DNA of 64,000 nucleotides from Hamiltosporidium tvaerminnensis FI-OER-3-3 (GCA_022605425.2 CM061251.1:868001-932000); one strand, 5' to 3'; counted from the first letter of the stretch, positions 12,501-59,280 are shown. The notes: a model not told the origin generated them from the sequence alone. Translations and numbers: made by a program.

Positions 12501-12519
12501 CCGAACTTTTCATTTATTG

Positions 12520-16951: not shown

Positions 16952-18625
16952 TTTAGGGGAAAATAAATTTTATTTAAATAATTTGACAAATTGAAAATTA
17001 AAACCACAAAAATATTTTTATATTCCAGAAAAACTCAATGGAGCAACACCCCCTCCTCACCTCTATTATAAGTTGACCGGGGTAGTCAACATATTACATA
17101 AAACTCCGATAATTTTAAAATTATAGAAATATGGCAGTAATGTCCCTTTCGGGATCCCTGTCGTAACTTTTCTTAATTTTTTTGAAGGTTTCTTGCAAGT
17201 TTATATTCTGGCAAATAAAAGGATATAGAAATATATAAATTTATTGAAAATGTTTCCGATTCCGTTGATTGCTTAAAAAATTTTCACATGGTTTTCAAAT
17301 AAAGTAAATTGTTATATTTTTCTTTTGTTATAAAAAATATTTAATTTTTCTCAAAGTTTCTAAAAAGGGGTTATTACGTATAGATATACTCATTTTGGTT
17401 TAAGTAATTAAACCAACTTTGGTTTTTCTTTTCTTTTCTCTCTTATTATTTTTGTTTTTAAGTTATAGAATATTTTCATATGAGTATATCTATTATTTTA
17501 TTTTATTTTTTTTTTAATTTTTTTTTTAATTTTCTTTCAAAGTTTGCTTAAACGTTTCTCACAACTCGGCCAAAAACTGTGGGTTAGTACCATCAGCGGG
17601 CAATATTTTCCACTTGAAATAAGTTTAAAATTTCTGAGATTTCTTGTTTCTTCCTAAATGGACTCAAGATTCTTGTTATTTTTTCAAAATTGGCTTTGTT
17701 GCTATTTTGAAAATTATACTTTTTTAAAAGTTCAATTTCTTGGAAAATATCAAAATTAACCCTAAGATTTTCTTTATTCAGTTTCTTGAATCTTTCTTTG
17801 GCGTCCATATTAGGTAATTTTTTTCTAAATGTTTTAATACAGTTCTTGATATTTCTGATGTTCTTAGTGAATAGTCTAAGAAAGGCAAATCTTATTATTG
17901 TCTTTTTCATTTGTAGTATTCTCTCGCCAAGACTATATCTTAGTCTTTCAACTCTCTGATGAATGATTCTATCGGAAATAGCGCATAGATAATCTTGGAA
18001 GGGGTTCGGTAGTATATATTGTACATAAATTTAATAACACCTTTTTGTATCCGGTCTGCCGCAGTGTTAAAAGTTGTATTGTATCCTAAGAGTACCGCGT
18101 GATAATATATATGTGGACAAACGTACATGTTAATGCACGTAGCTTTAGTTGTGGTAAGTTATGAAAGGAATCAAATTCGGATCTTTTAAATGCTCTGTTT
18201 ATAATAACCGCAGCCTTTATAGATTTTTTTCGTATGGTTTTTAAAGTCTCGTTTGTATCGGCACAGCGATTATTGAAATAAAACCCAAGATATTTAAGCG
18301 AGTTCTGTTTTTCAATTTTCTTTCCATATATAAATATGTTCAAATCTTTCGTTGCATTATAGAAGCATTTTTCGGGATTAAAAGTATATCTATTGAGTGC
18401 TGCATGTTTGCAAAGTCCGTCAATTATGGTATTTAGAGCCACCATGCATGTCGAGTAGATGACTATATCATCCGCGTATAGGAAAATATGATATCTGTAT
18501 TTTTTCGGAATATAAGAAATAATGTCGTTTATGAAGATATTAAACAGTATAGGAGAGATAATACTTCCCTGAGGTAAACCCAGGGCAGCCGTTTTGAATT
18601 TTATATTACCAGTACTTTTCTGACT
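16952..18625 (-). mobile_element. LINE copy D: 5'-truncated inside RT
   Basis: ORF 18086-18637 has GLPQGSIISPILFNIF, YADD and KYLGF; LFPIE lies in 17940-18128. Stem-loop at 17133-17162. Confidence 0.93.
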
Positions 18626-21600
18626 TAGGGCGAACACATTTATTTAAACAGAAATCAGCTTTTCCATAGACATATACAATATCTGATTTTGATTTGAAGT
18701 TTAAAAGGATAGAGTCAGATACACAAGAGCAAGTTAGGTTGGTAAGATAGGGATAAATAGAGAATTCGAAATATATTTAGTTCATATAGAAGAGGCCCTG
18801 TTGTGTTATAAGTTTTTAAATTCTAAAAATGCTTGCTTTATATACATTCTTATAAAAAATATTCCATCTAAATAGGCAATATTGTCCCGTTATCGAGCTC
18901 ATTACCTTAGAGATACTGTAAAACAGGTATTGACGTTGATAAGATTATATATCAACATTTTCATAAGCGAAAAATTCACTTATTAAGTAAAGTCGACTGT
19001 TTTACCAGATCGAACGAGTTAGTTGTTTACTACCATATGTATTTATGTCCCGACTTATGCACATAATCTTACATGAGCCCTTTAACAAACCATATCAGCG
19101 TAGATAGTAAGAGTAAAAGTACATTCAGCTGCGAATATCAAAGTAAGAACGAAATCGTTCCGTATTTGTGGCATGTGTTTCATTGCTTCTACATAAGTAT
19201 GGTGAAAAAGAAATATGTCAGGAAATCGGAGGATTACTACTAAGAGATAGATAATCCCATACCCATAGACAAAGTAAGAGTACCACAGTAGAAGATGCCA
19301 CAATATTAAAAATTTAACTATATTTATAGTTTTATATTTTTAATATTCAATCATCTTTCTTTATTTATTTTAAGTAGACAAATCGAAATTTTGATGTATA
19401 ATCTCTAACCAACAGACACAATCATCGAAAGTTAATTTTTTGAATTATAACTACTTGTTTCCATTAATTATAAGACTAAGTTTAAATCCTTTTGCTTTGA
19501 TATCCATCTAAAAATATATTTAGATCTCAAAGTGATATTAATATCTTGTAATTCCCACTAGTATAGGTATTTGTTCATTATGTAAAGACTTGTTCTTAGC
19601 TTTATATCTAATTGGCAAAGTAAATATTAGAAATGATTTAAATTAATTTAGCTTAAGTGAAATATATTTATTAAAGATTCATTAAATCTTTATACCAAAT
19701 TAAAATATTATGGATCGAAATTGTTTTTCGTGTGAATCCGTAATGATTCATAAGAAAGTCAAGATCAAAAAAACCAAAAAACATTAATCCAAACATTTAT
19801 AAAATGTTGTAAAATTGTATTTGAACAAGGTAGATAAATTAAAAATATTGAAATTAACAAATAATTAAATAAAAACAGATAATGAAATGTAGTTTGCATT
19901 TTGAAGTAGTATAATAAGAACAATATTATCAGTTCGAGACATATTAATGTACTATACAATTTATTTAAATTTAATTCTTTAGATAATTAGAGTAAAATAT
20001 TAAATAAGTCTAATAACAAATATAAAATAATGGAAAGCTAAGTAATATCGTTACAAATATAAAAATTATGTTTTAAATTGGTCGAATATGAGTTAATAGT
20101 AGAAAAGGAAATTTTTATATGAATATATTGAAATGAATCAAATATAAAGATTCTCTAATATAGATTTTAGGATTTAGCGAGAATAACTTACTTCTGTATA
20201 AATCTAAATAAAAGTATTTTATTTCAACAAAGTCAATAGTATCACACTTCTAAAAATTCTCTTAAAAGTATTATACATGATATTTAAATACTCTTTCAGA
20301 TTTATATCATTCTTTAAATTAGAATTGTATTCTTTATAAGCAACAAAAACAATATATTTATAATAGAAGCTATAACTGTAAATAAATTGAAGAAAGGTAA
20401 ATAGTATAAGGTTATATAGGAATCCAAAGTTATGTATGAATACCCTATATGATCAAATTTTCATTCAGTATATTGAAGGCTTTTGAAAACATGTTCTCAA
20501 AATTTAATACGGCCATATTTAGGTCAAACACAACGTATTATGGCCAAGATTAAAAAATATTATTTTAAGATACTCAGTTAAGGTTTGAATAGTTAAAATG
20601 TTCTAAATGACCATAAAAAAGCAAGCAATACCTTACACTCAAAAACTTCTAATTATAGTAAATTTTATAAGTTTATTAGACTTAACACTCAAAAATCATA
20701 GAAGAAGAGAAAATACTATATTATATATTCAATAACAACACATTTATACGAATCAATGAATTTAACTGTAAATGAATATTAAATTAGCATAAAATTAATA
20801 AATTACATCAAAGTATAGTAAAATCATAATTTATTTAGAACTAAGTATTACTTTACTAAAACAAGACAAGATTAAAGTAGCCAGAGTTGTTTTATAATTA
20901 GAAAAACTGCGCATGAGCAACAAGTATAACTTGGTAAAGGAATAACAAAAGAAATGTATAAAAATAATAGGAACAATTTAAAACAGAAAATTGGACTAAA
21001 AAAACATGAAATATGAAAAAAAGCAATTAAAAATAGAATTAAAATAAATTTTATCTTAACCGACTCTATACAAGTGAAAATTCTAAACTAAGAAAACATA
21101 AATAAAATAAATGCTTAACTAAAATTTTCCACGTAAAAGAATTAAAAGTTCGATAATTGTAAATGAAATTTGAAATGGTACAATTTTTTATGCAAAAAAG
21201 AAATATTTTATCTTAGCCGCTATAAAAAATACTAATTTCATATAGAACATAAAATATGAAATATATACTAGTTTATATTACAGAAAAGACTCTACAGATT
21301 TTATACAATATAAACTTAAGTTACAAAAAAGCAACTGAAATCTACCACTAGTGATGTAAAATAACGAGTTAACCAATATAAATAAATTTTCCTATAATAT
21401 AAAGCCAACATCATACAGTTAAACTTAAAAAATATATGATAACAACAAGTAAATTATTTTAAGTAAGTAATAAACATACAAATCAAGCGTTTAATATGTT
21501 ATAAAATTCAAACTATAAAAATTTATAGCATAATACAGAAGAAGTGACAAACGTATTAAAAAAATGTATAAAAAACCTACTAAAGTTTATATCCCAAAAA

Positions 21601-22900
21601 TATGTACTTAGTGAAAATACATAGTATTCCAAATAATATTTTTTAATGAAACATCTAAATTTTATCTTTTTTAGTAAAATTATTGTGTAATGAATTGAAT
21701 CGAACAACCAAGCACTGTTTATTTTCGTTATTAATATCACATTTTACAGCCTTAAAATTGTATACTCCTGAAACTCCGTAGAAAAATAAAATGTAATACA
21801 AATCTAAGTGAGAAAAGTATTTGGTCTAAATAAAAACCGTATAGTTTTATAAGAAATGATATGTTATTCTAGGTGAATTATAAATTGCATTGTAAACTAA
21901 AAGAAACTATGGATATTTAAATTAAAAACAATAGTTCAGTTCGATAAGATTTATTTCATTAAAAAATTAATACCACGATGAATCGTACAATACAAACCTT
22001 TCAACATCAGAATCAGTTTTTTATGATGAACTAATATAATATAAAACAAATACTACCCTAAACAAAAATAAGCGGTAAATTAAAATATCAAAACAATATT
22101 ACAAATTTATAATAACAGACTATCTCGGTTATGAAAAAACTATATTTCCGATATACCACGCCATAAGATTGATTAAAACACTTACATTCTTTTTACACAG
22201 AGGCTAGTATGGATTTTTTTAACGACATTCAGACAGTGTTAGGTTTAAAATATGTGACGGACCTCCTCCACACTATCTGTACCACTTACGATACCCATTC
22301 TAAGGCTTTCATTTATAAGGTATATAGCAACTATTATATAGAAAAGTGGTTTAATTAGCGTTTGCCCATATCTGTTACTAAATTTTGATTGTAGGTAGAA
22401 CACAGCTCGAACTTAACTTTTCGAAATTATGCAGAATTTTCACTTACTCTATTTACTCCGAAGCCAATAAATGCTAGCTTAAATATATTTTGATGACTAA
22501 CACAGACCTACTTAGACAATGCAATATCATAACAAGAGTATAACATGTTAAATCGCTTCACAGTTTTAAAATTATTTAATTTCTATCTCTTTACGGTAAG
22601 TCTTAAACCTCAGATATAGATGAATAAGTCTCTATCTTTTTACATAGCGATTAACCACAAGTTTAATTGATGTCTTCAATCTAGCCACGTAAAAAACCAC
22701 AAAATATTTTATAGAAAACTTTTCGAGTTTAGAGATCTTTTTTTTTAATAAGAACAGCCATGGAACCCTAAAAATATAGTGTAGTGTTTTACGAACTAAA
22801 AGATCAAACAATGAATTCACTCATACCCTTCATCTTTCATTTTCCAGTAAAACAAACTTAATGTGGTTACCGCTCTCCACTATGGCCTTAGCAATTAGAA
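18625..22900 (-). mobile_element. U element copy U1 (about 4.3 kb, no RT motifs found, LINE-type 3' stem-loop)
   Basis: Colinear homology with 55170-59280, 30610-33550, 33550-34210 and 39730 onward (e.g. ATTCACTTATTAAGT, TTAATACGGCCATATTTAG, ACCTTACACTCAAAAACTTC, TAGAAAAACTGC). Stem-loop at 18875-18906. The right boundary is approximate. Confidence 0.75.
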
Positions 22901-23295
22901 AAAAAATCAATTTTAACATAAACCAGTTACTTTTAAATTCAATCAAACTAATCCACCTCTCTTTTTAAATAAATTTGCACTTAATATTTTTTAAAAAGTA
23001 TGCCTCTTTATGAAATATGTTCAAATCATTTCTTCTGAATAAAATTATTTTTATATCTGAATAAATAAAAGAATACAAACTAGTATGTGATTCAGAATGA
23101 TAGCAAGATCAAACAGAGTAATATATTCTCTTTTTTTAGAGGCTGATATTTTTTGTATTCACAAATTTTCTTACATCATAAAACACTTTTTTAAATGATA
23201 AAATAGGAAAGACATACAAAAATCGAATGCTTTATTGCGATTTCAATTAGCAAAATAATTTAGAATATTTTTTTAACCTTCATCATTTTTCTGTA

Positions 23296-23449
23296 TGTAG
23301 AATTTAGCAAGATCTTAGGTATAGGGACAAATTTTCTGATGTTTTTTTTTAATCAAATTTAAAATAAAAAAAATCATAGAACTTCGGCGAAACTTAAATT
23401 CATTCTCATGAAATTTGTTCATAAACTTAAGGTCTTGCTAAATCCTACA
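23296..23449. mobile_element. MITE-like element, about 154 bp, with about 44-bp imperfect terminal inverted repeats, TG...CA ends, flanked by TA
   Basis: Left arm TGTAGAATTTAGCAAGATCTTAGGTATAGGGACAAATTTTCTGA matches the reverse complement of the right arm, TGTAGGATTTAGCAAGACCTTAAGTTTATGAACAAATTTCATGA. TA at 23294-23295 and 23450-23451. Confidence 0.75.
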
Positions 23450-26400
23450 TAATTTGAAAAGTAGGATTTATAAATTAATTTTATAATTAATGATCTAATT
23501 TAAGAAAAGGAAACTTAGAAGGACAAGAGTATTATATTACTAAGTTTTTCTGATTTTATTACAACATTGAGGTTATAAAAGCGGAAAAACAGATGTGGGT
23601 CTTTGAAGCTGTAATATAAAAGAAACAAAAATATTTTTTAACTTTAAGAAAATTATAGTCAAAAGAGTTATGATCCTTATAATGAAAATTATTAATTATT
23701 TTTGTTAATAGCAGTGTATTGATAAGAATTATGAAGGAAAGCTTCGGTATCATTTTCTTTTTTTTATCTATAGCTAAGATTTCTATTCCAAATACACTAA
23801 CTTATAAGGTTTTCAAATCACAGTTTAAAATCGGATAAGGGTCTACTACCAAGAGAATATAATTTTTTTAAAATTTATTTCATTTCAAAAGAAAAAAAAG
23901 TGATATTCCGAATCTTTGTAATAAAATAATTTTAAAATATTATCAGATAATGATATTTAAAGTGTCTTTAACCTTCATAATTATATATTCATCTATAAAC
24001 AGTAAAACATGGTTGCAAAAAAAAAATATTTTAAGATTTTTAGGATTATTCTTAAATTTTTCTAGCGTATATTAGATTTTTTACGTTTTAAAGTACTACC
24101 AAAACCAAAACATATTTTTAAAAAATACTAATATTCTGTAAGAATTCAACATATATGCTGAATAATATTTGTAGGTTTTCAAAATGCAAAATTCGAATGG
24201 CATCTATTCTATTTACATATTAGATGTGAAAATTTTTTTATTTCTATGCAAAAAAAACAAACCCTAATATTGCAGTATAATAATTCGGATTTCCAGAATA
24301 ATAGGCCTTCTATATTTGAAAATATTCTTAAGTTTGAAATAATTGATACACAGATACTATTACCAGGCGTTTATAATTAACAATTTTTTTTTGAATAAAG
24401 ATAATTCTAATTCAAAGTACGTTTAGATTATCAAAATATTGGTAAAAAATTTTTGTGCGTTGAGATGCATTTCCTATCTTCGAAAAAATACATAAGATTT
24501 TCATTCATGTACCTTGAACTTAAAGATATACATTCTTTTCATAAAAAATTTGTTTTAAAATAGTTTAAGAAAATATTTCAAAATTAATAGCTAGAAATGC
24601 AACATAATAAAAGTTATATTTGAAGCTAAATATGCGAAATATATTTAATTGTCATTCGGATTATAACCACATTAAAATGCTTCAAATTGACTAGTTATTA
24701 TTTGGTCATTTATTTTGGCGAGAAAAAGCTGTTGGAAACTATATATTTCTACAATACGCAGAATAAAGCCGTTTGAAGTTTACAAAACACCTTATTTGAT
24801 TAAAACAGGTGATTTATTATGTTTCGAAAAAAACTAAAAAATAACGATTATTTCTCGTTCGATGTATGTCTAATAGAATTTTAGTTCCAATACTGAAGAT
24901 ATATACTGTTAAAGACATAGAAAATAAATATATAGGCTAAAAAAAATTTAAATTATCGAAAAAGTTATTTTTCCATTCGGTATAAATATTCAAATAAAAT
25001 TTTTTTAGAAATTTCCTTTACACCTTTTTACAGAGTTTTAACCCTGTGATTTCGATTAAAAATTTCCCTTCTCTAAATATTGGAATAAAAAAATGGTGAC
25101 AATTGTTTAGATAAGCTGGAATCTTGAAATAAAAAGAATGAGCTTTGTCCGTCAGTTAGTTTTCGACCCGGGATATTTTTAAATTAATTCCAACGATGTT
25201 AAATATTTTTAGATTTGATTATGATATAAAAATAGAAAAGCAAAGTTGCGATTTTTACAAAGATTGCAAAACTTTCTAATTCATGAGCCTTGCAAAAATT
25301 TTGTTTATTGCTATTTTGATTTATTTTGTGGCAAAAAGAAATTTTAGGAAAACAAATAAATGAATCTACAAGAGCTTAACATATGTAAAAAAATCCGAAC
25401 CTTTTACTAATTTTCAAGAAAACTAGGACACATTAACATAAATTTATAAGCAAAACTTTTTTGATTCTTAGCATTCTTGCTATTTCTTCTTTTCTCATCA
25501 GTGTTTTGGTTTTTAATGTCAAAAAGCATCACTAGGTGAATCATTTTTTTTGATCCGTATTAGAGTTTCAGAAAAGACTACATGTCTAAATTAGTTGTTT
25601 CCGTATAATTTAAAGGTACAGATTAATATAATAAGGTACTGCCGTTTACGTGCTAAACAAATGCAAAATTAAAATTCTTATATATTGTAAAGTCTAATGA
25701 TATAATATTTGATATCTTGATTGTATTAAAAAAAATTATTTTAAGTTTAAAATCGCACGATTTACAAATTTCCTTTTAAATTTGAAATACTATTTAAGAG
25801 TTTATTAAAACACTGAAAACATCAGAATGTACCTTTTCGAGAAAAAGTATTAAATAGTATCACCAAAAATGATTTCCAACGCCGGTAATTTTGGTTGACA
25901 GTATCTATACACATAAGAGATACAAATTTCTTAACCAAGCCAATAATTGACTGTAAAGAAACATATTAGAACATTTTTGATTACTTTCTTGTACTTGCAT
26001 TCTTTAATAATCTCATCTAAATAAATATTAAATCATTTAAAGTAGGTTTCTTCGTTGCCTTTTTAGTTTGTTTAAGTTTTTCGTAAGAAAAAAACAAGGT
26101 AAGCATATAATGCAAATATTAGCAGAATTCTAGTATAGCACTACATTTTAAAGACTATATAAACTTAAGCTTAAATCTAAAATCTTGGTACATAATTTTC
26201 GAAATGTTTCATAGAAGTTTAAGGGGAATTTGATATGCATCTCCAAGAAGTAATTCTTACTCACTAGTCTTTTATTTTTAAATGCAGTCATACTTCTTCA
26301 AAAAAAAACATATAAAGTATTTTTAATTGTAATTTTCTGAATGGTGAGTCTATTTATGTACAAGCTAGAAATATACAAGGCATATCTTGCGCTGATCAAT

Positions 26401-29062
26401 ATAAACTATGTCTAAAATGAAAATTTTTTGGCACAATCACGAAAACAGAGAAAAAAATGAATTGTTAACTCAAAGTACTAAAAAACTCAATTAATTTCCC
26501 GGAATATCATAATCTATGAATAAGTGCTAATATAAATTTATGGTTTAATGTTGAGAAGCAAATACCAAAAATTTAAAAATACTGTAGTTTGTTAAAAATC
26601 ATAAATAAAACATAAAAGTAAATAAAAATCGAGAAAAAATGCTAAGTTATACAAAAAAGTAAATAAACCAAGATTTACGAATAATATGCATCTAAAAAAT
26701 CACAAGATATAACTTTTTATGCAAATCAAATTGATACTTATATTTTGTCACAAAATTTGATAGATGTATTCTGATTAAACTAAACATAAAATAGTCAATA
26801 AAAATGCTAAATTTTTTAAAAAAAAACGTGAAACAAGGCATTATTTTCTATGCGATTTCTTCTGTATTTATTTTTGACTATGTACACATGCTACTGTCTC
26901 AATAATTTTTCTGTTTTACTTTTTCAAGATTATATTTATTCTCAAATTTCTTTTTACATAAAAGATCTTTCCAAAGAAAAATTATCTTCACTAGATCTTT
27001 TTAGAATATTTTTAGTTAAATGTATTGATTAATAGAATAGATAGTAATCAAGGAATTCATTTTTATCAGGAAATGGCCTGTTTGTTGTAATGAACATAAA
27101 ATAACTAAGTCTAAAGGCATATGCTTTTTTATTAAATACTCATAACATTCTTAGAAAGATGAAATAAATCATAAGTCGTTTTAAAGTTTAGCTTGAAGAA
27201 AGGGGGTTAGAGAATGTCGCGCAAGTAAGATCCAGTGTTTGTAAAAATTTTTGTTATTAAAACATGATTAATTTTCTCATTTAGCTATATTTATTTCGCT
27301 TTTAATAGTAAAATATTTACTTTAAAGTTTATTTTTAATTTATGACTTCACCGAAACTTGTCGATTTTTGGAGACTGTTTGGTAATACAACATATCATTA
27401 AAATATCTTAGAAATTATGATATTAAAAATTTTTATCCTATGATATCTAATGTATAAAAATTAAATACTTAATTTCACAATATATAAATTTCCAACTTTT
27501 TTTTAAAAAAAGACGCTGAATTTTAAAAATATTGTTTTATCCAATCCCAAATTTAAAAAAAATCAAAATAGCTTAAGATTTTTAATATAATAATGCGCAA
27601 TAAGCTAATCTAGAAATTTACAAAGCAAAATATTACACTTATATATAATTATAAAAAAAATTGCAATATTTCTTAAAATGTAAAAAAAAAATAAAAGTGA
27701 AATTTTCCGTAGAAATAAATTTTGAATATTAAGGAAAACAACTAAAGCTAAGATATCCACGTTAGAAACAACCCGCTCACGATAAAAAGTGAAAGACATA
27801 TTTGAAATCATTATTTAGATTTTGACAGAATCTACGATAAAAAATTGCCAGCAGTTCCATCAAATTCATATACATTGTAATGGTCTAACATTAGCGCTTT
27901 GTTTTCTTTAATTTAAGAAATGTAGTAATTTTGATACTAATTTTAGATTATAATCTAACATGTTGGTAGTCGCTAAGCCAACTTCCGGAAACCACCTTGC
28001 ACATTTGAATATGAAGATCGCTGCAAATTTGACCAATGTAAATATTTGAACATGAGAACCGATATAACAGATTATACCTATAAACTTTACATTAGTTGTC
28101 TATATGGACCCCTGTAAGTCTCCGAGATACATTCTAGCTGAATGATTTTCGAATTGAAGATTAGATCAAGTAGAAATGCTGCACCTTTTTAAAATTTTAG
28201 AAAGCGAAATTGGGCCTGCGAATCGTACCTTGTTTGCAATAGACAAGAAAAATTCTGGAGTTACTGACTCGCCTATTATATAAACTCTAGAGATTTTTTT
28301 ATAAAATTTCCCGGTATTTAAGTATCGTAAGATATACCAATAAATTGATACGGGGTAGTTCTATGTAAAACCAGCTAGAGTTAATTCCTGCAAAAAATAT
28401 AACATCTTTCTTTGTTTTATAAGAAGTGATATTTTAAATAACTAAAAATTTGCAAATAAACTCCGTTAATTTTGTTTCTTGCTGTATGTAGAAATTATAT
28501 TATTCACTACATAAATTAAGGTTTAAATTATTAAAATCCTTTAAAACGAATTAGTTAATAACAAAGAAAACAAGTAGAAATTTATTCTTCGAACTATAAA
28601 TGTAAAAAGTTTTTACTGTGGAAACTTAAATGGTTTTAAAGATCGGAAATCGAAATCAAATTATTTTTGAATAAAAAATGTTTTTATTTCTTATGTCAAT
28701 TAAATTTCAAAAAAGTTTTAATAAATAATTTATCTAAACGTGTACTAATTCCATGAATGAATTTTTCATATTCTGCAATTTTAATAAGACTGTTATTGAT
28801 TTGAAAATTTAAAAAATTTGAAATGTATTATTTTGTGTCATATAAATTGCTTTAAATAATTTTATATATTGAATTGCAAGTTTTTCATGTGTTTTAAAAA
28901 TAATTTGATTTATTAGATAAATCTTTAGTAATAAACATATTTTTACAATTTAAAATATAATTTATTTTTGTGCATGTTTGATCGAACGCAAACCTATTAA
29001 TATAAAGTTTTAATGAAACTGTGATTTATTTTAAAAACAAAGAAAATGAAATAGAATTTGAT

Positions 29063-29101
29063 ACCCCTACAAAACAAAAATATTTTAAATTTTGTAGGGG
29101 T
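29063..29101. repeat. Perfect 12-bp inverted repeat (ACCCCTACAAAA - 15 nt - TTTTGTAGGGGT)
   Basis: Read directly from the sequence. Confidence 0.85.
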
Positions 29102-30609
29102 GGTAAATCTAATTATATTTTCTTCTCTTTTCTTTTCAAATTCAGTTTCTTTATATTTATTTTTAAATTCTACCCTTATGTTCTGAAATGAAAATGTATT
29201 TTTTACTGAAGAAATTTTGATGAGGATGCAATACAAGAAATATAAAAAAAATGAAATCGAATGGAATTTTGGCAAATATGTGGAGGATATAGATTGTATA
29301 TTATAGTTCGCTACATCCTTAAGATTTACCTAACAGATGACTTTGTTTGTACAAAATTGTTTTCGGTTTTAGATAAGCCATAAAATATAGGTGAGTAACA
29401 AAATCACACTGTTGGGTATCAAGCACAAAGCTTGAATGTTATAAAGATCATACGAAGGAATATCTTATTTTTATTTCTGATTATATTATCCTAGAAACCA
29501 TTTTTTAAAAGGTGTAATTTCAGTAAAGAGTTCCTATCCTTCGAGATTAAGCAAAATATGTGGTATTGTGACGGGGAGTAGTAAAAAGAAAACATAAGGT
29601 GTGGTAAGTAAGTCAGTGCTCATTGGTTGGTCATTTGTCTTACATTTGATGTTTAGAATTTGTGAAAAAAATCTGAAAGCTATAAAGAGGTTTGGTGAGT
29701 ATAAGAACAGTAATCTTCTACATTTGTATTTTCTGCTGAAAGTGGCATGAATTAGAAATTTATGCCTTTGGTTAGATTAGAACACATGGGAACTTTTGAA
29801 TCGAAATTTAAGAAGTTATGTGTCTTAATAAAATTTATTGCGGAAAATATTTGTTATATTTTTAAGAAATGAAAATAACCGGTATATTTTGATACATTCT
29901 ATTTGGTATTTCTGAAAATAAATACAAAAATCAAATACATATCAAAAGTTGGATAAAAAATGCATTTGTGATATCTTGAGAATAAATTTTGATGCAATCA
30001 AAGAAAATTGCTTTAGAATTGAGAAATTTACTACAGAAAAAGGTTGTAATATTAGTCCTCTTTTTAAGAAAGATGAAGTTAAACAAATTTAAAGATTTAC
30101 AAGAAAACTCAATAAAACATTCTAAATGGGTTTAATATTTATTTAATTCCGTTGTCATTTACCAGGAAAACATATTTTTTTTTCAAATAAATTTTTAAAT
30201 CCTAATTCAATTATTTCTCTTTTTGTTATTGCTCAATTGTTTTTTACAATCCCATTCTTTAAATTTACGTGATCCTATATTTCTTTGTTCAGAATCCAGG
30301 ATTTTATTTTGTGAAAGGTACTTTTCGAATTATAATACAATTTAATAGAAGTTTATATTTACTCAAATTCTTAAATTAATTCAGCATTTCTTATTCGAAT
30401 AATATTTTATTAATGGGAAACATAGTATTCTATTCTAATTGAAGAAATACAATCGATCTCTATAGTATGAGTGGGTAATTGTTAAATCATGAATATTCAA
30501 TTAGCTTTAGTAATGTTTATCTTAAGATAGATAAATTGTGCTTCACTTTAGAATAAGTAGCTTAGAAATAACACATTTATTCAATAAGAGCAAAACTTTC
30601 AAAGACCCT

Positions 30610-39700: not shown

Positions 39701-39729
39701 TATCAACATATCTAAAAAAATAATAAAAA

Positions 39730-44600: not shown

Positions 44601-45849
44601 GATTAACAAATATATTTTAGTTATATAAGAATAAGTTTTTGTTTCAAATTACATTTTCGGCAATATAAATATAATAAGAATTATAAAAGTTCATAAGAAA
44701 TTTTTTTGAGTGGTTTATAAGCCAAAATACTATGAAGCATGGAGTTAATTATGATAAACCTGGTTCGATTGTATATCTGTTCTATTTTATATAACCGTCC
44801 TTAAAACAAAAGCATATTTTTATCATTTCCTGTAAGAATATGCAAAAACATTTCAAATTAAGTATATTAGTCAAGATTTTTTATAAACAAAGTTAGCTTT
44901 ACATCTCAATCACTTCAAAAGAAAACTGCTAAAAAAATATTTAAAAGAATATTTAAAAGAATATTTAATAATTAGATTGTAAAATTGTGCAATAAATTTC
45001 GATGGAATTAAAATTTTGACTCAAAAAGTTAAAAATATAAAGAAATCTTTAAAAAGATATGCAATATTATTTAAAAAATGTTAAAAGTCCTCACAACTTT
45101 TTATTTATTTATTTTACGTTTAAACAAACGAATGTAATTAGTTATAAACCGGTAAAATTGAATAGATTTATAAAAGGTAAATTTAGCTCTACTCCTAGAA
45201 ATATGAAAAGAATTTCCAAAAGTACTATATATTTGTAAAAAGATGTAACTAAATTAATAAAATTGATATAAATAGTTAAAAAGACATTAAACTTAATAAA
45301 TACAGACTATACTTCTAACTCTGGAATAAAAAGTCTATTATATAAAAAAAAATGCCACTTTTTTTATAATAATGCAAAGAAACATTAGAAGATATTAACC
45401 TATACAAATTACAAAGAAAATAATTTAGTGACCATTGTTAAAAGGAGCAAATAAAATTTAATCCACATAAATATCTAAATACTAAAAAAAACCATTGATT
45501 TAATACAATGGTATGCCTTCTAAATATTTTTGGTAGAAATCCAACGAATAACATTTCTAAATTTTAAACAAAAATTAAATTGAGAGTTGCTTCATAACCT
45601 TACGTAAAAATAAAATAGATATAAAATATATATTATAGGCAGAAAAATATCTAAAAAAAATCCAATTAAACAAAACGTGCAATTTAAAACTAAAAATTTT
45701 ATAAGTTTGCAAGAATGTGTTTAAAATTATAATTTAGATAAAACTGGAATTAAAATAAAAAAAATAGGAATAGAAAAGAACAAAAAAATCAGTTTATTTC
45801 AAACTTAATATAATTGCTTAATAAAAAAATACAATTACATTGAAAATGT

Positions 45850-48800
45850 ACGTATGTCCAAGACCTAATACTACATAAGAGGCTTATTTCTTTTTTTTTC
45901 GAAAAAATCTTTTATTGCTTGTACGATATTAAATTTTTCTTGCTTTAAAAAAATTAAAATTCTTTGGAAGTCTTTAAAACCAATCAAATCAAAATCATAA
46001 TATTTTAACAGTGTAAGATCCTTCCAAAATTTTTCTATTCTTATTAAGGCATTCATTTTTAATTATTTTAAAATTTTAATTGAACTAACGCTATCTTCAA
46101 ATACATATTAGACACATATATCTTTTATAAACTTAAAAATCTTTGTATTGTTTCTTATAACTTCATACTACAAACGTGTTTCTTTGTTTTCAGGAATTCT
46201 GAAAACGAGAGCAAATGTAAGTCAGATTAACCTTTGTTGTATTGTTTCAATCGGAAACAGGCATATATTTAGGTACTAGATGTTTTCCTAATTACCGAGA
46301 AAAAATACACCAAAGCCCCTTTAAATTCTTCTGTTATTAAGACGAAAGCACTATTTGCTGCTAGTAAATGAACATAAAATCAAATTTCGGTAGATCAGCA
46401 TAAGATAACCCTTAAAGAGCATTGCAAAAAACAGAGGGTTATCTTTTTCAAATTTTTGCTAAAGGCTGATCCTCAGAAATAGCTGACCTCAGAGCGTGTT
46501 TTATAAGTTCCTTAAACGAACACCTTGTATAAACACATTTTAAATTTAAGAAAAAGCCACGATATTGATAAAACCTTGTTTTACTAGTCCTATATCAATT
46601 ATTCTGATGCTAATCTTTGATTTTTGCCTTATAAACAGTCCCTTTGTTTCTTTTAGCCGATATTTGTTATCATGTGAATGTTTTTGGATGTATTATATTA
46701 GTTTAGAAATCTGTTTTGATATTAAAACATATATAAATATTTCTTCAGCATATATAAAAATGCTTTTTTTCTTTAATGAAGGGATATATAAAATAATGTG
46801 ATCGAAAAACCTTAAAAAGATCAGATAATATGACAATCCTTCGTAGCGATCCCCTAGAACCTAGCGTGAATTCTATTAACAAGTCCCCTCTACTGTAATA
46901 TACATAGAGTTTTGAACGAGTTCTGCAATAAGAAAAACATGATCTTTTTAAAATTTTATGAGTTCAATAATTTCTTGTATACTTCTTCTCATAACTCGGT
47001 ATCACTCGCTGATTTTATATTATTCGAAAACAGATTGAGCTTCCCTCACCCTTAACGCAAAAAATAATCTACACATATTGCATTATTCAGTGTCAACGCT
47101 TTTTCTTGAAAACCTGTTTGAAGATTGCGATAAACAATTAAAATTTTCTTTTTATGATCCTTCAGAATACTTTAATTTTTTTACATCAACGCGAACGGCC
47201 CATAGGCCTCATTTCCTTTCTTATCAATTCATTTTTATGTATTTTCCACGCCGTAGGCACGTTAGGTCAAAACAATCGTACTAATTACGTTGTTCGGATG
47301 TTTAAGAAAATTTCTAGGCATGGTTTTAGGCTTTCATTATTTATTCCACTCTATTCGCTTAAGTTTCTACATTGTAAAAGAGTTATATCATGTACCATAT
47401 CTGCGAAAGTAATTACATCTATTTTATCAGCTCTTTGTTGCAGTTATCACCATGAACGTTTCTAGACATTTCACATATTATATCTTATATTCTTACTAAT
47501 GAGATGTCTCTGCGTTTTCGAAGTTGGATCGTAGCAAATCTATTGCTCTTTATAACCTAGACTTTTAGAAATGGTATAACTTACAATTTTTAAAATTTCA
47601 CCTAGATTTAAGTTAACATAAGTTTTTTTCTGATTGCCTCAACTAATTTTCTGTATATTTCTGCTTTGGGCTTGTACTTATCATAATATATTTTTAAATA
47701 ATACGTCATTTTTTTTTCTTGCGAGCTGTTTTTCTTCTTCGCTATAAATGTGACAAATCCAGCTCATGACACACCTTTGCGTTCTTTCCCGTATTTACCG
47801 TATTCTTGATGTTCTGAATAATATTTTAAGTAAAACATTAAGCTTTCTCATAAGCAGATTATTCAAATAAACTTTCATTCCTTTCTTTTAAAAACAGAAT
47901 CCTAGGTATTATCTTTAAACGAATGGCAGTAATTTTTAAGATATAATTATTACACAAATTTAGTATTTATTTTCTGCCTGTTAAATAATAATTTAAATCA
48001 TTTTGTGATTTATGTTTTTAATCCCTAAGACTTCTGCTTATAGGCGAATTCGACAAAACCTTATCTATCTTGAAAATTAGTTTCCATGTTATATGCAAAA
48101 GAATATATTTTTTGTTTTAAATCTACCCAGTGCAATGTTTCTGTTCAATATTTGTTGTTCCTACCACGTAGCTGGTTCCGAATTATAGCCACTGACACCA
48201 AAATATTAACTTTTATAAATTTAAGCGAAAAAGAGATGATTATTTTTGACGAATTACTAGATGGAGACTTGCAAATAAAATATATAAAAGTATAACACAG
48301 CTTTATACGACTCGAAAATCAATAATCGATGGTATTATGGGTAGTAAAATAAATTACGAGCCAATGCTAGCATTTCTTTTATTTGAGTATATTTTTGGAT
48401 ATTTTTAAAATTAGGATAGCAGATATTTTATATTTTGAATCTAATTTTTCAATATCATCTCGCCACGTTTCAGCCAAAGCAAAAATACTTAATTAATTCT
48501 TCTCTAAAAGTTGATTTTTTGCACCTATTTTGTTCTCGGAAAAACCTTCTAGGTTATGAAAGCCAATATTATATAACTTCAATGTTTTTATTTTCATCGG
48601 GGAAAAGTTTCTTGTCTGAGCCAATACCTTTTACCCCCTTTATTTGCTCCAAAAAGAAACTCGGATAATTCTTTCCTATTTACATTATTCAATTGACCTG
48701 CAAATCTTTTAATTCTCGCCTTTGTGTTATGCTTTCTTTAATAAGTGCGTTTCATTCTCTCTTTAAGTTAGATATGAATAAAATGCTTTTGTTCATCTAT

Positions 48801-49400
48801 TTCACGACAGTCTTTAAGACCTTTTGCAGTCAATATTTCAAATGAATGTATAACATCATCTTTACATTTGTCTATACATATGAATTCTAACGTATCTTAA
48901 CTTGAAAAGTAAAAGTTTATGATAAATCTCGCCTATTCTCATTTATAGCCGTCAGAGCGAGTTTGTATGAACGTGTTCTTTTTCTTTTAATTCCTTTAAA
49001 ATATGAAAAAAAGTATTTTTTTATAGGGAACGGGGATTCTCCGGCTATAACTTTATCCATATGATCCTTGGATACCTTTAAAACCGTCTTGCTATTTGCA
49101 TTATTTGCATCAGCCTCATTAATTGTTCTAAATGAATTTCCGTGTTTTGTTTTCAATCCCAACCATATTTTCCGTTGCAATCCGTTCCTTCGGCCGTTCT
49201 TTTATATTAATCAAGGTGGTAGAAAAGTTTCAACTATTTTTAGGCATAAAACGCTAAAAGTTGTTGCGAAAGGACATGAACGTTAGTGGTTGTCTTTGTA
49301 CATTTATTACGATTATTTAACAAAGAACAATTTGGAAAATTTAATTTTAATTAATTAGAATCTTTTTTTCCCAATTCGCAATTGAAATATTTGGTGTTCG
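45850..49400 (-). mobile_element. LINE copy E: near full-length, heavily decayed
   Basis: Minus-strand remnants NIGFHNLEG and FALAETWRDD (about 48455-48570), YAEE at the YADD position (about 46741-46752) and LFPIETIQQRL (about 46228-46260). ORF1-like 48917-49180. Confidence 0.8.
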
Positions 49401-52949: not shown

Positions 52950-54300
52950 TACGAGAAAAAGTAAAGTATGTATTCCACGAATTTTAATGTTTTTTGTTCA
53001 AATTTAGTGAAATCAAATTCTATACAGATAAATAGAAAAAGTAATGATCGGAACAAGCAAAGCCTGTTTTTTAAAAAATAGAAGACTTTGTAATGTAATA
53101 TGAAAAAAAGGAAACGGTGCTTTAAGAAGAAAAAACAGGGCAGAAATTTCACTGAAATATTAGTGATGTCCAAAAAAATTTAAAGTTTCTAATATATAAA
53201 CCAAAAAATAATAATAAAAATCTAAATCTTTACAAAAAATAGTGTAACGGATATAAATATGACTAAAAAGAAGAATTGGTAGCAAAATTAGAAAACATAT
53301 GTACAGACTTAAGAAATGTAAGCAAAATATAAGTTTGCGAAAAATACCAAATATTTAAAAATACTTCAGATTATAAGCATGAAAAAAATATGTACATTAT
53401 ATACTGCTTAGCAAGTAGGAAAATAGTAAGAAAATCAAAGGGACTATTTTTTTTTGATATATGTAAAAATTTGGAAAGAAAAAAAGATATAACGGAATAT
53501 AAAAATGACAGTAAGAAAAGGCGGTTTTAATATATTTGAAAATTTAGTTATAGATAATAAGAATTATAGCCATTTTTAGAGACTATGAGAGATAAAATAG
53601 TATGAAAAATACCGCATTTGATAAGATTGAATTGGGGTTTAAAATATTTCAGAAAAATGCGAAAAAGCAGCTTCATTTGTAGGAGTATCTTCAGAAAAGT
53701 AATTAGTAAGATACTGCAATGTTTGACATAGAAAAAGGAATCAGCTAATTATATAGGAAAATATGATGATTTATACAAAAATAAGAGATGTAGCCAGTAT
53801 TTCTTTTAAATTTATCTTCAAGGAATGCAAGAAATTTTATCGACAACCCATAAAAAGAATTTATATCAAGGAACGTATATCAATTTATATTTAAGGAAAA
53901 CAATATATATAGGGGTAAGAAATAAAAAATAAACGATATTAGGATGTAATAAAAAATAGAGCAAAATCTTAAGCAATTTTACTGAGGGGGAAATATTAAA
54001 ACTTTACTTTAGTGAAAGTAGAATAAAGAAAAGAACGTAAAAAATAAGGAGAAAGTAAAAAAAATATTGAACTTAATTTTAAACAAATACAAGACTAGTA
54101 AGAAGAAGGATAAAGCCACCAAAAGCGTAAAAATCAAATAGCAGAATTTTACTTACTGCGTTTAAAATTTATTTGACAATAAGTTTCCAGAATCAGAAGT
54201 AAGAGTAAAAATAAAATTAAAGACAGCAAAGGCATCGGAATTGATAATAGTTAGCGGATGAAAATAGAGTTAGTGTAAAGATTGAAGAAAAATATGGAGA
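52950..54300 (+). mobile_element. LINE copy F: very decayed, opposite orientation
   Basis: Plus-strand remnants in the expected order: ISDV (about 53160), NY(R)P..LETMR (about 53563-53592), LGF (about 53632), FDIEKG (about 53722), YIGV (about 53906) and KFPE (about 54181). Confidence 0.5.
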
Positions 54301-55050
54301 AAGGTAGATAGAATACTTAGGGAATAAAGTAAGTTTCAATATGTAACGAATAAAATTAGAATTTTATAAATATATAGATATGTGAAATTTAGAAAGAAAA
54401 AAATTATAGGAAAAATTAGAAAAATGTAGAGTGGAAAGATAGAGAAAGGAAAGGTAAAGTATGATAACGAATTAAAAAATAAAAGTAAAAAAGTATGGGT
54501 AAGGAAATGATAGGGAATAAGGTTTGTTGAATTCTAGGCAAATACAGGATATATTTGAAAAGGCACTCAGTATGAATTAAGATAAAGAGATGAGTATTAA
54601 AACGTCTTGTAAAATATAGCATTGCTATTAAACCGTAAAAGAGTATGATTTGTTAAGAAAAAAGTTATTAGGAATAAATGTTAATTTTATGGTAGGAATA
54701 ATAGTAGAGAAAAAAGGACAAGGAGTTAAGAACTATATAGGGAAGAGGTGTGGGAGAGGTAAGGCTAGGATTGTCTTGGATGGCTAATCAAGTATATAAA
54801 AACGGGGTTATAAGCAGATAATAAGAATTATCATGGTAATGTAAGGTAAGAATGTGGATAGGAGGTAAGGAAAATACTTTTAGTGAAGGGTATATAAATG
54901 TTTGTTCTATGAGAGGAGGAATAATTTTATGTGGAAGAGAAAAATTTAATATAAGACGGAAGGTAGGAATAAAACTAGACTTATATCTAAGAAAGGTATA
55001 TATAGATGATTAGGGTTACAAATTATATAAAAGAACATAGATAATTGTAG
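54300..55050 (+). repeat. Purine-rich tract with recurrent TAGG(G)AATAA-like units
   Basis: TTAGGGAATAA at about 54317, TAGGGAATAA at about 54511, TAGGAATAA at about 54669, 54693 and 54964, TTAGGGTTA at about 55010. C is strongly depleted on the + strand. Confidence 0.55.
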
Positions 55051-55169
55051 AGGGAATCTGAAAATACGATATGGAATCACATTATATAAAAAGAATACAT
55101 ATCTATGTTAGAGCCTAAATCTCGCTCATGTATCAAAATTGACAAAAAGTTTTTGTATACGTTTATACG

Positions 55170-58100
55170 AAACAGGTAAGGATAATTAACAAGAATAAGG
55201 TTTTTTTATTAAAGTAAATAAAAGTTATTAGTTTTTAAAAGTTTAACCTATAAATCATAAAATAATATTTTATCGTTTTTTCTTTATGATATACATCTTC
55301 AAGCCGAGTTCTTTCAAATAGTCAATTGTATCCCATAATTGGGCTCTTTTCCTTGGAGTTATCGTAATCTAAGTTAATGATATTGGTATAGGTATTTACC
55401 AATATATTCTAAGTCAAATCATTCACTTATTAAGTTAAATCAGACTTTAACAAAGACCGGATGAGTTTATTGGCATTACCGTGTGAATCATAATAGAAAC
55501 ACATGTAAATAACCTTACATATGTACTTTTATAATACAAATTAGCATAGGTTGTGAAAGATATATATATTCTCAGTTGCGATTTTTTCAGTAAATGTATA
55601 TGTTGATCGTGACTTTTGTTTATATTGCTTTACTATAGATTTAATCTTTATTTATACAAAGAAGAATCAGAAGTTTCATACTAAGATGGTCTTAACTCAC
55701 TCGTAGCTGATGCCTTAACCTATAACCCTATTCACACTTTATTTAATTTTTTATAACCATTTGTCTTTCTATTTATATTTTTATTAGACAGATTTAAGTT
55801 CCATATGATAATCTATAAATCAAAAGATACTAGCATAGAAATTTTATTTGATGAGTTACAAATACTTGTTTCATTAAATTATAAAACTTTGTTTTATTTG
55901 TTTGCCTTAATATCTACCTATAAATATATTTAGATATCGAAATGTAATCATTATCTTTTAATTCACACCAATATAGGCATTTCTTTATTTTTTGAAGATT
56001 TGCTCGAGCTTTATATTAATTGTCAAAATATATATTATAAAATGAGTTATATTATGATGGTTTTTACTGAACTATATATATTAAAGATTCATTCTGTCTT
56101 TATACCAGAATTAAAATATTATTCAAATTATTTTAATCCGTATTGCTTCAAAGAAAGTGAAAAATCTAAGAAAACCAAAATAATATAGATATACATACCT
56201 TTTAAAAAATAGTTATAGCAATCGTCATTAACCTAGGTAGATAAATCAAGCGCATTGAAATTAACAAATAATTAATGCATAAACAGTTATTGAAATGTAG
56301 TTTTTATAGAAAGTAATATAAATAAAATAAGGTTATCACTTCAAGAGGTTTTTCTAAATATACTATTTAGTTTTATTCAATACTTTCGAACTTAGCACTA
56401 AGATAGTATATAGATTTAATAAAAAGACCTTACAAAATTTAAACATTTAATACATTTATTCTATAAAAATTCAATTTGGTTCACTCTGGCTATATATTAT
56501 GAAATGAAATATTTATTTATATGGATATAATGAGACAAATTAAATATTAAAATCTACTGCCTATGGATTTTATTACATATGAATAATAAATTAATGTCTT
56601 ATAAATCTATAAAAATATAATCCATTTCAAGAAAGGAATAAGTATACTTTTCTCATTAATTCATTGAAAAGTTCAATACATGATAAAAATACCTTTTCAA
56701 ATATACATCTTTCTTTCGCATATATTTATGTTTTTTTAAGTAACATAAACAATACATTTATAATAGATGACTGGTATTTTGCTCAATTTAAGGAAAGGAT
56801 AATGATATCAAGTTATATAGAAATCGAAAGTTATCTATAAATCCCATATATGATTAATGTTGGTAACAATATACTGAGAGCTTTTCTGAACAATTTCACA
56901 AAAATTAATACGGCCATATTTAGACTGAACACAACTTATTATGACCAAGATTAGAAAACCTTATTTTAAAATGGTTAAATATGGTTTTAATAGTCTGAAT
57001 ATAATAAATGAACATAAAAAAACCTACAATACCTTACACTCAAAAACTTCCAATTATGGTAAATTTTAAAAGCCTATTAAGGTTATCCACTAAAAATCGT
57101 ATAAAAAGAGGAAATGCTTAAGTATATATTCCAATGCAACATATTGATATGATTAAATAAATTATAAGATAAATGACTATAAAATTAAAGCGTTTAAGGA
57201 AAACAAGATAAAATTATAGATTATTAGAAAATAAAATGGTTTTTTATTCTATAACTTTAAGATTAAAAGAACTAGATTTGTTTTATGAGTAGAAAAACTG
57301 CTTGCATAAGTAACCAATTTAACTTAGTAAATGAGTAACAAAAGAATAATCCGAAAAGAATTTAAGCAATCAAAAGAAATGTGGATTCGAATAAAAAACT
57401 TTGAATTATAAGAAGTAAAAAGATATAAACAAATGAAATTTAAAACAACAAACTAAATTTAAGAACCATTCTGTAGTTAGAAAATATAACTAAAAAAATA
57501 ATAAACTAAAAAATTCAACTAAAAAGCTTAAAGATGAAAAAAAAAGTAAATAAAAGTCAAAATATGATGCAAATTTTTATATTAGAGACAGATTAAAAAT
57601 TTAACACATATAAATTATATCAAATTCAAATTAAACATAAAAACGAACCAGAAATGGTTTATATCGATGAAGGGGCTATATTATTTATACAGTATAAGGG
57701 TTAGTATAAAAAACTAACTAATAAATTTGAACTATGTATCTGAAATAAAGACTTAGTTAAGATATATATTTTTATAACAAGGAAAGCAAACACAAAGATA
57801 GTTAAATTTAAAATTACATATAAAAAATAAATATTTATTTTGAAGTATGTCATTATAATTCTACTGCTAATATGCAATACAATTGAACTTACCATAATAT
57901 ATCAGAATTAATACTGAAGAATAGACACAGTATTTGAGAAAATAGATAAAAAAAACTTAAGTAAGATGTATATTTAAAAAGATGTATTTGGCCAAAGTAA
58001 AAAGTATTCTAGACAATTAAATTAATTGAAATTTAAATTTCTAATTTTAGATAGAATTTTTGTGCAAATACAAACGAAAAGTAACATTTTGTTTGAATAT

Positions 58101-59280
58101 ATATCAAATACCAACTCCTTTAAAAAGTAAAAGCCAAATAAGATAAAAAAAATAAACTTTAATATGAATATTAAGTTTGAAAAGTTTTTTTGTAAATTTA
58201 GACCGTTTAATTTTGTAAATATTATATAGAAAGCTATAAGATTATAATTCAGTTCAAGGAAGTAAAAGAGAGTATAAGATGTTCAAATTACAAAAGAGCC
58301 TAGTGTTCTAAAGTAGTGTTTCTAAAAAATATCACTACTAATTTTAACGTAAAAGATTATGAATTTTATTAATCAGAATCAGGTTTTCAAAAACAATTTT
58401 AATTACATAAAAAATAAAAAAAATATAAATTAAGTCGAATAAAGACTTAAGAAAACCAAAAGGTATTTAAAGTACAGAAAATCGCAATAAAAGAAACATA
58501 TGTAATAATTGTATCTGCTAAGCATAAAACAGATTTTGAACTATCTCATATTTTTGTACCTGAAGCATGCATTATTGGCCAAATTAGATGTAACAGGTTC
58601 AAAATTTAACATAAGTGACTGCTTCTCGTACACTTTATCGGTACTTTAATTGTTCTTAGATCAAAAGAATTACCACGTAAAACGCGTAGAACAACCTATT
58701 TCTTTCCAAATGCAGTCTGGAATATTTGTTGCAGTCCCTTGACTAAGATTTGATCGTAAGTCAAATGCTATTCTATGTATCTCTAAGACCATGCCGATTT
58801 TAGACTTACTTTAGCATTACCACTCTATTTGACTACATCTAAGATATAGCCCAGCGAATTACATGGGTTCAACCGAAAGTAGCATTTTCATACGGTAGGT
58901 ATAACCTGCATCTTAGGTTCCTCAACTTTAAAAATTTTAATTTGTGTTTTTCCAAGTGTTAAGTCTCAAATTCGAGTGATAAAAGTGAAGATTTCTTCGC
59001 GAATGACTAAAAACTAAGCTGCAGTTATAAATCTAGTTACATTAAAAAAAAATATAAATAGATTCGAAAAAGTTTTGCAATTTCGAAATCCTTTACATCT
59101 TAAAACAACCAACTATCAAATAACAGAATATTTTATGCAGATCTATCTCAACCTAAAAACTAAAAAAATATTGTACAACTAAACCTTCAATATTTAGTTT
59201 TAAGGCAAAAGTATTTTTTTTGGTTATTTCCCTCACCAGTTTTTTGTAAAATACTTTTTTTAATCTCGCAAGCATCGCAT
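55170..59280 (-). mobile_element. U element copy U4 (about 4.1 kb)
   Basis: Colinear with U1 over about 4 kb: ATTGAAATTAACAAATAATTAA (56254 vs 19846), TTAATACGGCCATATTTAG (56905 vs 20504), TCAGAATCAG (58373 vs 22007). Stem-loop with perfect CCCA-ATTA-TGGG at 55321-55352. Confidence 0.75.

Follow-up and report, generated by a model that had tools for sequence, protein, structure and literature searches.

Long elements without reverse transcriptase that share a 3' stem-loop with subtelomeric LINEs in Hamiltosporidium tvaerminnensis: candidate non-autonomous partners at chromosome ends

Microsporidia are known for stripped-down genomes, and Hamiltosporidium tvaerminnensis is a microsporidian parasite of Daphnia. 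We analyzed a 64,000-nucleotide stretch of strain FI-OER-3-3 (C6:868001-932000 of a 21.6-Mb, 17-contig assembly; the window), which holds copies of a long interspersed nuclear element (LINE) and five long units, U1 to U5, that carry the LINE 3' stem-loop. The question raised by this locus is how units of several kilobases, with no reverse transcriptase (RT) of their own, come to be stacked with LINEs beneath a telomere. The original prediction, made from the sequence of the window, was that U is a non-autonomous, cargo-carrying element mobilised in trans by the LINE RT. On balance we lean towards an answer of this kind, in which U elements would be discrete, non-coding, RT-less retroelement-like units that are restricted to subtelomeres, share a 3' module and are mobilised by a LINE RT at telomeres.

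Contig C6 is 1,005,214 bp long and has TTAGGG repeats on both its ends, as has every chromosome end examined. Its right telomere is 73-137 kb away from the window, and the plus strand of the window runs telomere-ward. The sense strand of U is the minus strand in the window, that is, it reads in the telomere-to-centromere direction. A 931-aa RT ORF of a related locus is 100% identical to an NCBI protein of H. tvaerminnensis. For comparisons we used further loci of the genome (labelled L0xx), among them a set of 30 loci with U copies; the hairpin searches covered about 330 kb of window plus loci.

Anatomy of the U elements and their 3' hairpin

The U copies were found by blastn at about the places originally claimed, all of them co-oriented and 68-75% identical to one another. 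Their minus-strand 3' termini were located at 18625 (U1), 30556 (U2), 33481 (U3), 39661 (U5) and 55075 (U4), in agreement with the homologous left end that had been proposed for the five copies. All five have in common a 3' module of about 0.75 kb, which contains three hairpins and ends AATAAA..GTTCGCCCTAA; the U1 terminus is ..AAATAAATGTGTTCGCCCTAA at 18625, and U2-U5 have related termini. A single family differing only by 5' truncation had been expected, but at least three body types were found beyond this one 3' module: U-B (U1, U2 and U4), A-long (U3) and a third type (U5).

All of the following extents are on the minus strand. U1 (18625-23770, 5' limit approximate at 23.77-24.16k) consists of an A-type 3' module (18625-19341) ending in ..GTTCGCCCTAA and a U-B body (19341 to about 23770). 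U2 (30556-33480) is 5'-truncated at the U1-equivalent of about 21604. The homology of U4 (55075-58194) was followed to the U1-equivalent of about 21828, past which the copy is either truncated or too diverged to follow. The original prediction was approximately right about the places of these elements but not about their extents, since U1 continues to about 23.77k instead of 22.9k and U4 is traceable to about 58.19k instead of 59.3k. U3 (33481-38433, 5' limit approximate at 38.4-38.65k), previously read as a 0.65-kb stump of a U1-like copy, belongs instead to the A-long family and extends to about 38.4k; its body is homologous to the A-long copies L017-L021 and to the terminal elements of C6-right and C5-left. 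The A-long family is also present at C13, C14, C2, C9 and C12, with a mutual identity of 89-94%; these copies (the one of C13 at 52.4-57.0k) and the terminal copy of C6-right are the youngest. U5 (39661-45730, with the terminus ..AAATAAATGTGTTCGTTCTA and a 5' end at about 45.73k) was considered as a member of the U1 family and rejected, because its homology is confined to the 3' module.

U elements measure about 4.6-6 kb. U1 is chimeric: its last 720 bp are of the A-long type (92-94% identical) and are joined to the U-B body at 19288-19341, the product of a 3'-module swap between U families. That U is a discrete unit is supported by its precise 3' end in many contexts and, for A-long, by a defined 5' end.

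Two features lie within U bodies. A segment of about 400 bp inside U1 (22428-22824) recurs with 68-70% identity, on either strand and at sites distant from contig starts, in C11, C8, C12, C2 and C3, and in inverted form in L008; it resembles a small dispersed transposon that was inserted into U1 or captured by it. In L017 (oriented 2519-2993; C13 at about 55.5-56.0k), the A-long body includes a tandem array with self-match offsets of about 105, 160, 265 and 320 bp.

Does U encode anything? Six-frame phmmer with 12 LINE proteins gave no RT or apurinic/apyrimidinic endonuclease (APE) signal in U1-U4, as had been claimed for the RT, and near the U copies of the 30 loci such a signal appeared only where a separate LINE adjoins. 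No open reading frame (ORF) of at least 120 aa was present within any U copy of these loci. The divergence between U copies had no 3-base periodicity in any 600-bp bin of nine pairwise comparisons, whereas diverged LINE ORF pairs, the positive control, had it at p = 7.6e-13 to 2.1e-30. The N-terminal 345 aa of LINE protein P0002 had no match in U, and the window contained no Rfam family and no tRNA. The data support the conclusion that U is RT-less and evolves as non-coding sequence; the term 'cargo-carrying' has to be dropped, as no ORF or foreign gene was found in U.

It could be argued that U is instead a decayed autonomous element of another kind, whose protein has eroded past recognition. 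In line with this idea, U1 and L033 have open stretches of 55-95 codons on the minus strand at matching places. Such stretches are, however, expected from a T-rich strand, and they are common to U1 and L033 only because the two are about 80% identical in DNA. Together with the missing codon periodicity, the lack of an ORF of at least 120 aa in about 30 copies and the negative RT/APE, Rfam and tRNA searches, this makes a decayed autonomous element very improbable.

Two other candidates were rejected. A hydrophobic minus-strand ORF proved to be a composition effect of translating the T-rich strand and lacked codon periodicity, and U as an inverted or internally deleted LINE gave neither a six-frame protein signal on either strand nor DNA similarity to LINE 5' regions. 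Four public RNA runs, taken as uninfected host and compared with 16900-22800 at 85% likeness, contained 0-5 partial reads per run, all of them less than 90% alike, which has no bearing on whether U is expressed.

What U does have in common with the LINEs is found at its 3' end. In the LINE 3' untranslated regions (UTRs) there is a stem-loop about 32 nt long, two instances being those at 15504-15535 and 17132-17163. With a covariance model that was trained on seven LINE hairpins only and on no U sequence, the U1 hairpin, H3 (18875-18906, minus strand, 250 nt from the terminus), was the top non-training match in the window, on the same strand as the LINE hairpins (26.3 bits, E 1.6e-5), and U hairpins matched with E values of 1.6e-5 to 5e-6. 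All non-training matches with E<1 in the window and loci were in U 3' modules, LINE 3' ends or truncated remnants. The distance between H3 and the terminus is 246-255 nt in each of the five window copies; the other four hairpins are at 30809-30839 (U2, diverged), 33736-33768 (U3), 39910-39940 (U5) and 55321-55352 (U4). In the H3 fold 95.8% of cells pair and three of the eight pairs have compensatory changes, and its covariation score was reached by none of 500 shuffles. These results bear out the stem-loop of roughly 30 nt that the original prediction had described in both U and the LINEs.

In the three-hairpin module of U, 78.9% of cells were paired, compared with 33-44% when the partners were slid, although these hairpins were drawn by eye and then pair-counted, and the control is biased in that the structure was derived from the same sequences. 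The two hairpins upstream of H3 in this module are kept across U families as well, and H2 has compensatory changes in five of seven pairs. From the whole U 3' module RNAalifold derived next to no consensus structure, since the decayed copies give a noisy alignment. The ends of LINEs and U are also alike (TAAATAAA..CCCTAA). The conserved 3' terminus of U is similar to the microsporidian start-site motif AAATTT/CCC and may serve to transcribe the next unit. The similarity consists of the hairpin and the terminal motif only; blastn found no other, 5' regions included. H3 of U and the stem-loop that telomere-associated APE-RT LINEs carry in their 3' UTRs are one and the same structure.

The LINEs were mapped by tblastn and six-frame phmmer (with X at stops), with the 12 LINE proteins as queries. 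A head-to-tail array on the minus strand (6879-16954; Pfam, tblastn, phmmer and the hairpin model) is composed of LINE A (6879-8181), LINE B (8600-12387, spanning the whole 1262-aa protein), a LINE fragment (12404-13596) and LINE C (15585-16954), with H3 hairpins at 8521-8552 and 15504-15535. LINE D (16942-18613, minus strand; protein match 17602-18613, also by Pfam) is 5'-truncated within the RT at about 18613, and has its hairpin at 17132-17163 and its 3' terminus, ..TTTTCCCCTAA.., at about 16942-16960. A decayed APE-RT LINE of another type, named after locus L044, occupies 45730-49100 on the minus strand (ORF 45877-49090), directly 5' of U5. The minus-strand LINE copies of the original prediction were confirmed in these maps and in a Pfam profile search of the window, in which the ORF pieces matched RVT_1; the Exo_endo_phos match of the partner LINE ORFs was below the Pfam cut-off (22.6 bits vs 24.5).

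Residues E37, G-D-x-N (132-135) and D175, which we take to be the APE catalytic motifs, are conserved across homologues of the LINE protein, and this suggests that the endonuclease may be active. Intact relatives of 843-939 aa are found near other contig ends, where their sense strand always points inward. A PDB sequence search with a LINE ORF gave generic RT matches only (R2, group II intron), too unspecific for a clade assignment.

Further LINE sequences were noticed during this mapping. Proximal to LINE A, at 5930-5965 on the minus strand, the LINE hairpin model had an additional match (18 bits, E 0.005). It is probably all that is recognisable of the 3' end of an older LINE, in which case the array would reach about 5.9k. 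A first look at the whole genome with the RVT_1 profile gave 466 candidates. Many of these are ORFs of about 1250 aa that are spread along contigs with identical profile scores, and they have the look of a second LINE family, one that is dispersed, apparently of recent activity and separate from the subtelomeric LINEs. One LINE copy of this type adjoins a truncated U-B in L015.

Junctions and chromosome ends

How U elements were added to the array can be read from their joints. Each U 3' end adjoins an older, 5'-truncated element, and no more than about two telomere repeats separate the two. The 3' end of U1 adjoins the break inside the RT of LINE D (about 18613), and the 3' end of U3 adjoins the break in U2 (about 33480; U1-equivalent 21604); both fusions had been noted in the original prediction. 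The broken LINE D and U2 do not resume beyond U1 and U3, respectively. Because broken elements never resume on the far side, these joints argue for terminal addition in succession, not for nested insertion. Elsewhere the A-type terminus was found against at least seven unrelated flanks, with 0.5-2.5 telomere units at the joint, and B-type termini in several further contexts.

The orientation of U is uniform throughout the genome. All 40 scored U matches were toward contig ends, those at low coordinates on the minus strand (20/20) and those at high coordinates on the plus strand (20/20). They lay less than about 170 kb from a contig start or, in the case of high coordinates, close to the far end of contigs of known length. 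Some elements form the chromosome end itself: C6-right ends in an A-long copy under a TTAGGG cap, C5-left in a repeat-capped, 5'-truncated U5-like copy, and C1-left in a 5'-truncated LINE ORF. Degenerate telomere-like units also occur inside the window, as G-strand tracts on the plus strand. One of them (37900-39660; 13 TAGGG vs 0 CCCTA, G 18.7% vs C 6.4%) overlaps the 5' region of U3 and fills the gap up to the 3' terminus of U5, and the other (53900-55074; 5 TAGGG vs 0 CCCTA, G 21.5% vs C 5.7%) is directly proximal to the 3' terminus of U4. Taken together, these data support the conclusion that U elements are stacked head-to-tail with LINEs in arrays pointing away from the telomere.

Two other repeats of the window have a bearing on telomere-like sequence. 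At the centromere-side edge (1-645) there is a 16-bp satellite with the consensus AAGTAGGAAAATAAGG (40 copies, 88% matches), whose TAGG/A-rich unit resembles the degenerate telomere-like tracts farther out; it adjoins two small ORFs, 1404-1557 on the plus strand and 1660-2163 on the minus strand, the latter of 167 aa and without a Pfam match. A short inverted repeat, CCCCTA..(25 nt)..TAGGGG, is located at 29065-29100, in unexplained sequence between U1 and U2.

Block duplication and the L044-type LINE

The observations that weigh against mobilisation of U as a unit of its own concern its age, its duplication in blocks and its neighbours. The U copies in the window are old, as their identity of 68-75% indicates, and the 5' end of the U-B type is approximate only. 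An 8.9-kb block of the window (21700-30600) recurs at 90-91% identity in C5 (111320-120216), C16 (117723-126630) and C4 (1169999-1177074), and 34688-43419 matches C5:888-9523 at C5-left over 8.7 kb. A run of 5,531 bp is 100% identical between L004 (C6:971329-976859, right arm) and L005 (C5:33052-38582, left arm), so that either these subtelomeres exchanged sequence very recently or the assembly is collapsed here. Because block duplication is so pervasive, U copy counts and polarity are not independent events, and much of the copy number of U comes from block duplication between chromosome ends. Break-induced replication from interstitial telomere repeats could also mimic precise ends with different proximal flanks. 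The original prediction had named flanks shared through duplication as a finding that would speak against it; such duplication is indeed extensive, but precise 3' ends in unrelated flanks are present as well.

These duplications raise the possibility that U is a recombination-propagated subtelomeric repeat, like yeast Y' or Plasmodium TAREs, which arose from an ancient LINE 3' UTR and has since then not itself been reverse-transcribed. Its copies, their polarity and the 'precise ends' would then result from break-induced replication and telomere healing. Multi-element blocks are common to chromosome ends at 75-100% identity, copying from end to end preserves polarity, telomere-repeat remnants at the joints could seed recombination, and no very young identical U copies were seen in unrelated contexts. 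Nevertheless, we regard this explanation as quite unlikely. Most joints contain at most one TTAGGG unit, which is itself the element's own terminus, and this is not long enough for homologous invasion. The broken element ends that U 3' termini adjoin are of at least six kinds, the A-type and B-type termini have the many unrelated flanks described above, and the distance from H3 to the terminus is constant at about 250 nt. In addition, the hairpins of the 3' module are kept by compensatory changes across families and the module has been swapped between bodies, which argues for selection on an RNA.

The 21700-30600 block itself holds the 5' part of U1 and unexplained sequence, of which 24.2-26.8k is unique to the four copies.

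The neighbours of U are a separate difficulty. Every detectable L044-type 3' end adjoins a U element: an A-long copy in C13, C14, C2, C16, C3 and older copies, U5 in the window, and a truncated U-B in C6-left. The tail of the L044-type LINE measures about 190 nt and lacks both H3 and a CCCTAA end; in the window the ORF of this LINE ends at 45877 and a tail of about 150-190 nt follows, again without an H3-type hairpin. The U-B 5' ends, and the gap in C13 between L044 and L017, were derived from coordinates. An RT ORF is absent from within U1-U4 and A-long, and U5 and A-long copies lie directly 3' of L044-type RT ORFs. This adjacency fits a composite element as well.

U could accordingly be a multi-kb 3' trailer of the L044-type LINE, or obligatorily co-transcribed with it, and the U copies would be 5'-truncated remains of a 9-kb LINE. 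Long 3' UTRs of this sort are known from Drosophila TART and HeT-A. The L044-type ORF that runs straight into U5, the repetition of this arrangement on the contigs named above, the short tail lacking both hairpin and terminus, and the failure to find any detectable L044-type 3' end beside non-U sequence are all in line with a trailer. We judge it unlikely because of what was found at the joint. The LINE parts of L044 and L045 are 93-100% identical, and precisely where the LINE meets U the identity falls to 71-83%. The few differences between the two ORFs are not codon-periodic, so that selection does not account for this gap; the LINE and U parts are therefore of different age or source. An L047-type LINE with a hairpin and terminus of its own at its end also adjoins the same A-long 5' end, the L044-type tail in C6-left adjoins a U-B copy cut at a different internal point, and U-B copies extend for at least 5 kb without an RT upstream. 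Because of the identity break, the L047-type joint and the RT-free U-B copies, we treat U as a separate unit.

A further hairpin with a stem of 7 bp (GTTAGTA..TACTAAC) directly follows the stop codon of the L044-type LINE (L044:2820-2850; window about 45860-45830, minus strand). It is conserved in L045 and only partly so in the window copy and L036.

The pairing of the L044-type LINE with U could also mean that the two form a split telomeric retroelement, in which a LINE without a 3' module of its own propagates only via the 3' module of U; we consider this doubtful. The RT would prime on U RNA at a telomere, copy this RNA as far as its exact 5' end and switch to the mRNA of the LINE; alternatively, the L044-type LINE would read through into a resident U. 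If true, this arrangement would account for the repeated fusion of young LINE copies, exactly at the U 5' end, to U copies that are diverged. In that case U would be no parasite of the LINE but a 3' 'adaptor' that the LINE requires, and the pair would be a two-RNA mutualism maintaining chromosome ends.

A candidate mechanism, known systems and significance

The shared 3' features make it plausible that U is reverse-transcribed in trans by a LINE RT. If U is mobilised in this way, as we favour, its RNA would end AAUAAA..GUUCGCCCUAA-3', complementary to the G-strand of TTAGGG, like the LINE ends. The LINE-encoded RT would recognise H3 on this RNA, and the CCCUAA tail would anneal to a TTAGGG 3' end, either at the chromosome terminus or at an endonuclease nick in a short telomere tract. 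The cDNA would be laid down there, each new unit distal to an older, 5'-eroded one, so that polarised head-to-tail arrays would build up beneath the telomerase cap. Whole multi-element blocks would later be copied between chromosome ends, and this would give much of the copy number.

Among described systems, MoTeR1/MoTeR2 of Magnaporthe (Pyricularia) oryzae comes closest: there, an RT-less element has the termini of a telomere-targeted, RT-encoding LINE (PMC7367193). As in MoTeR, head-to-tail arrays are found at TTAGGG telomeres, the joints range from half a telomere repeat to a few, 5'-truncated elements are capped by telomere repeats, element 5' ends have telomere-like sequence, copies are internalised as 'relics' and arrays are rearranged by break-induced replication (PMC7367193). 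The differences are considerable. MoTeR1 is CRE-like and has a REL endonuclease, whereas the partner LINEs of H. tvaerminnensis are APE-type. MoTeR2 is 1.7 kb long and shares 860 bp at its 5' and 77 bp at its 3' end, whereas U is 4.6-6 kb long and no similarity to the LINEs is detectable at its 5' end. The arrays described here belong to a microsporidian host and reach at least 100 kb.

In stringent LINE/SINE pairs such as eel UnaL2/UnaSINE1, the partner, a short interspersed nuclear element (SINE), bears the LINE 3' stem-loop that is recognised by the RT. U resembles UnaSINE1 in having the LINE 3' stem-loop and in the exchange of 3' modules between non-autonomous families. Unlike SINEs, which are shorter than 0.7 kb and have an RNA polymerase III head, U has no tRNA, 7SL or 5S head and is ten times longer, and unlike UnaSINE1 it is confined to chromosome ends and has a telomere-complementary tail rather than short tandem repeats or poly(A). 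A second comparison is with Drosophila, which has no telomerase and whose telomeric elements end in oligo(A); HeT-A encodes Gag and no RT. U and the LINEs share with HeT-A/TART/TAHRE the polarised terminal head-to-tail arrays, variable 5' truncation, very long non-coding 3' regions, the 3' end of one unit just upstream of the 5' end of the next, and an RT-less member that depends, in the case of U presumably, on an RT-encoding one. In contrast to HeT-A with its Gag, U encodes nothing detectable, and TTAGGG is found on every end examined.

Elements that coexist with telomerase repeats in a fixed orientation relative to the repeat strand are also known. The Bombyx TRAS/SART elements are telomere-repeat-specific LINEs with poly(A) tails, and are not known to have a long RT-less partner. 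Athena/Coprina are endonuclease-deficient Penelope-like elements, and the 3' end of Athena has reverse-complement telomere repeats that can anneal to the G-overhang. Both resemble the H. tvaerminnensis arrays in this coexistence and orientation; unlike the Penelope-like Athena, the LINEs described here are APE-type. Our literature searches found no paper describing these arrays, and term searches within two H. tvaerminnensis assembly papers (PMC10542269, PMC12449221) returned no mention of them.

These results describe a microsporidian with ordinary TTAGGG telomeres whose chromosome-end domains, of at least 100 kb, consist largely of polarised stacks of LINEs and long RT-less partners with predicted RNA tails that match the telomere. 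The arrays account for part of the 'other' repeat fraction and for contig-end assembly gaps in the H. tvaerminnensis genome. They would add a microsporidian case to the few systems in which the work at chromosome ends is divided between retroelements and telomerase (Bombyx TRAS/SART, Magnaporthe MoTeR and rotifer/fungal Athena/Coprina), and they offer a compact candidate RNA signal for template choice by an RT, a hairpin of about 32 nt whose distance from a CCCUAA tail is fixed at 250 nt.

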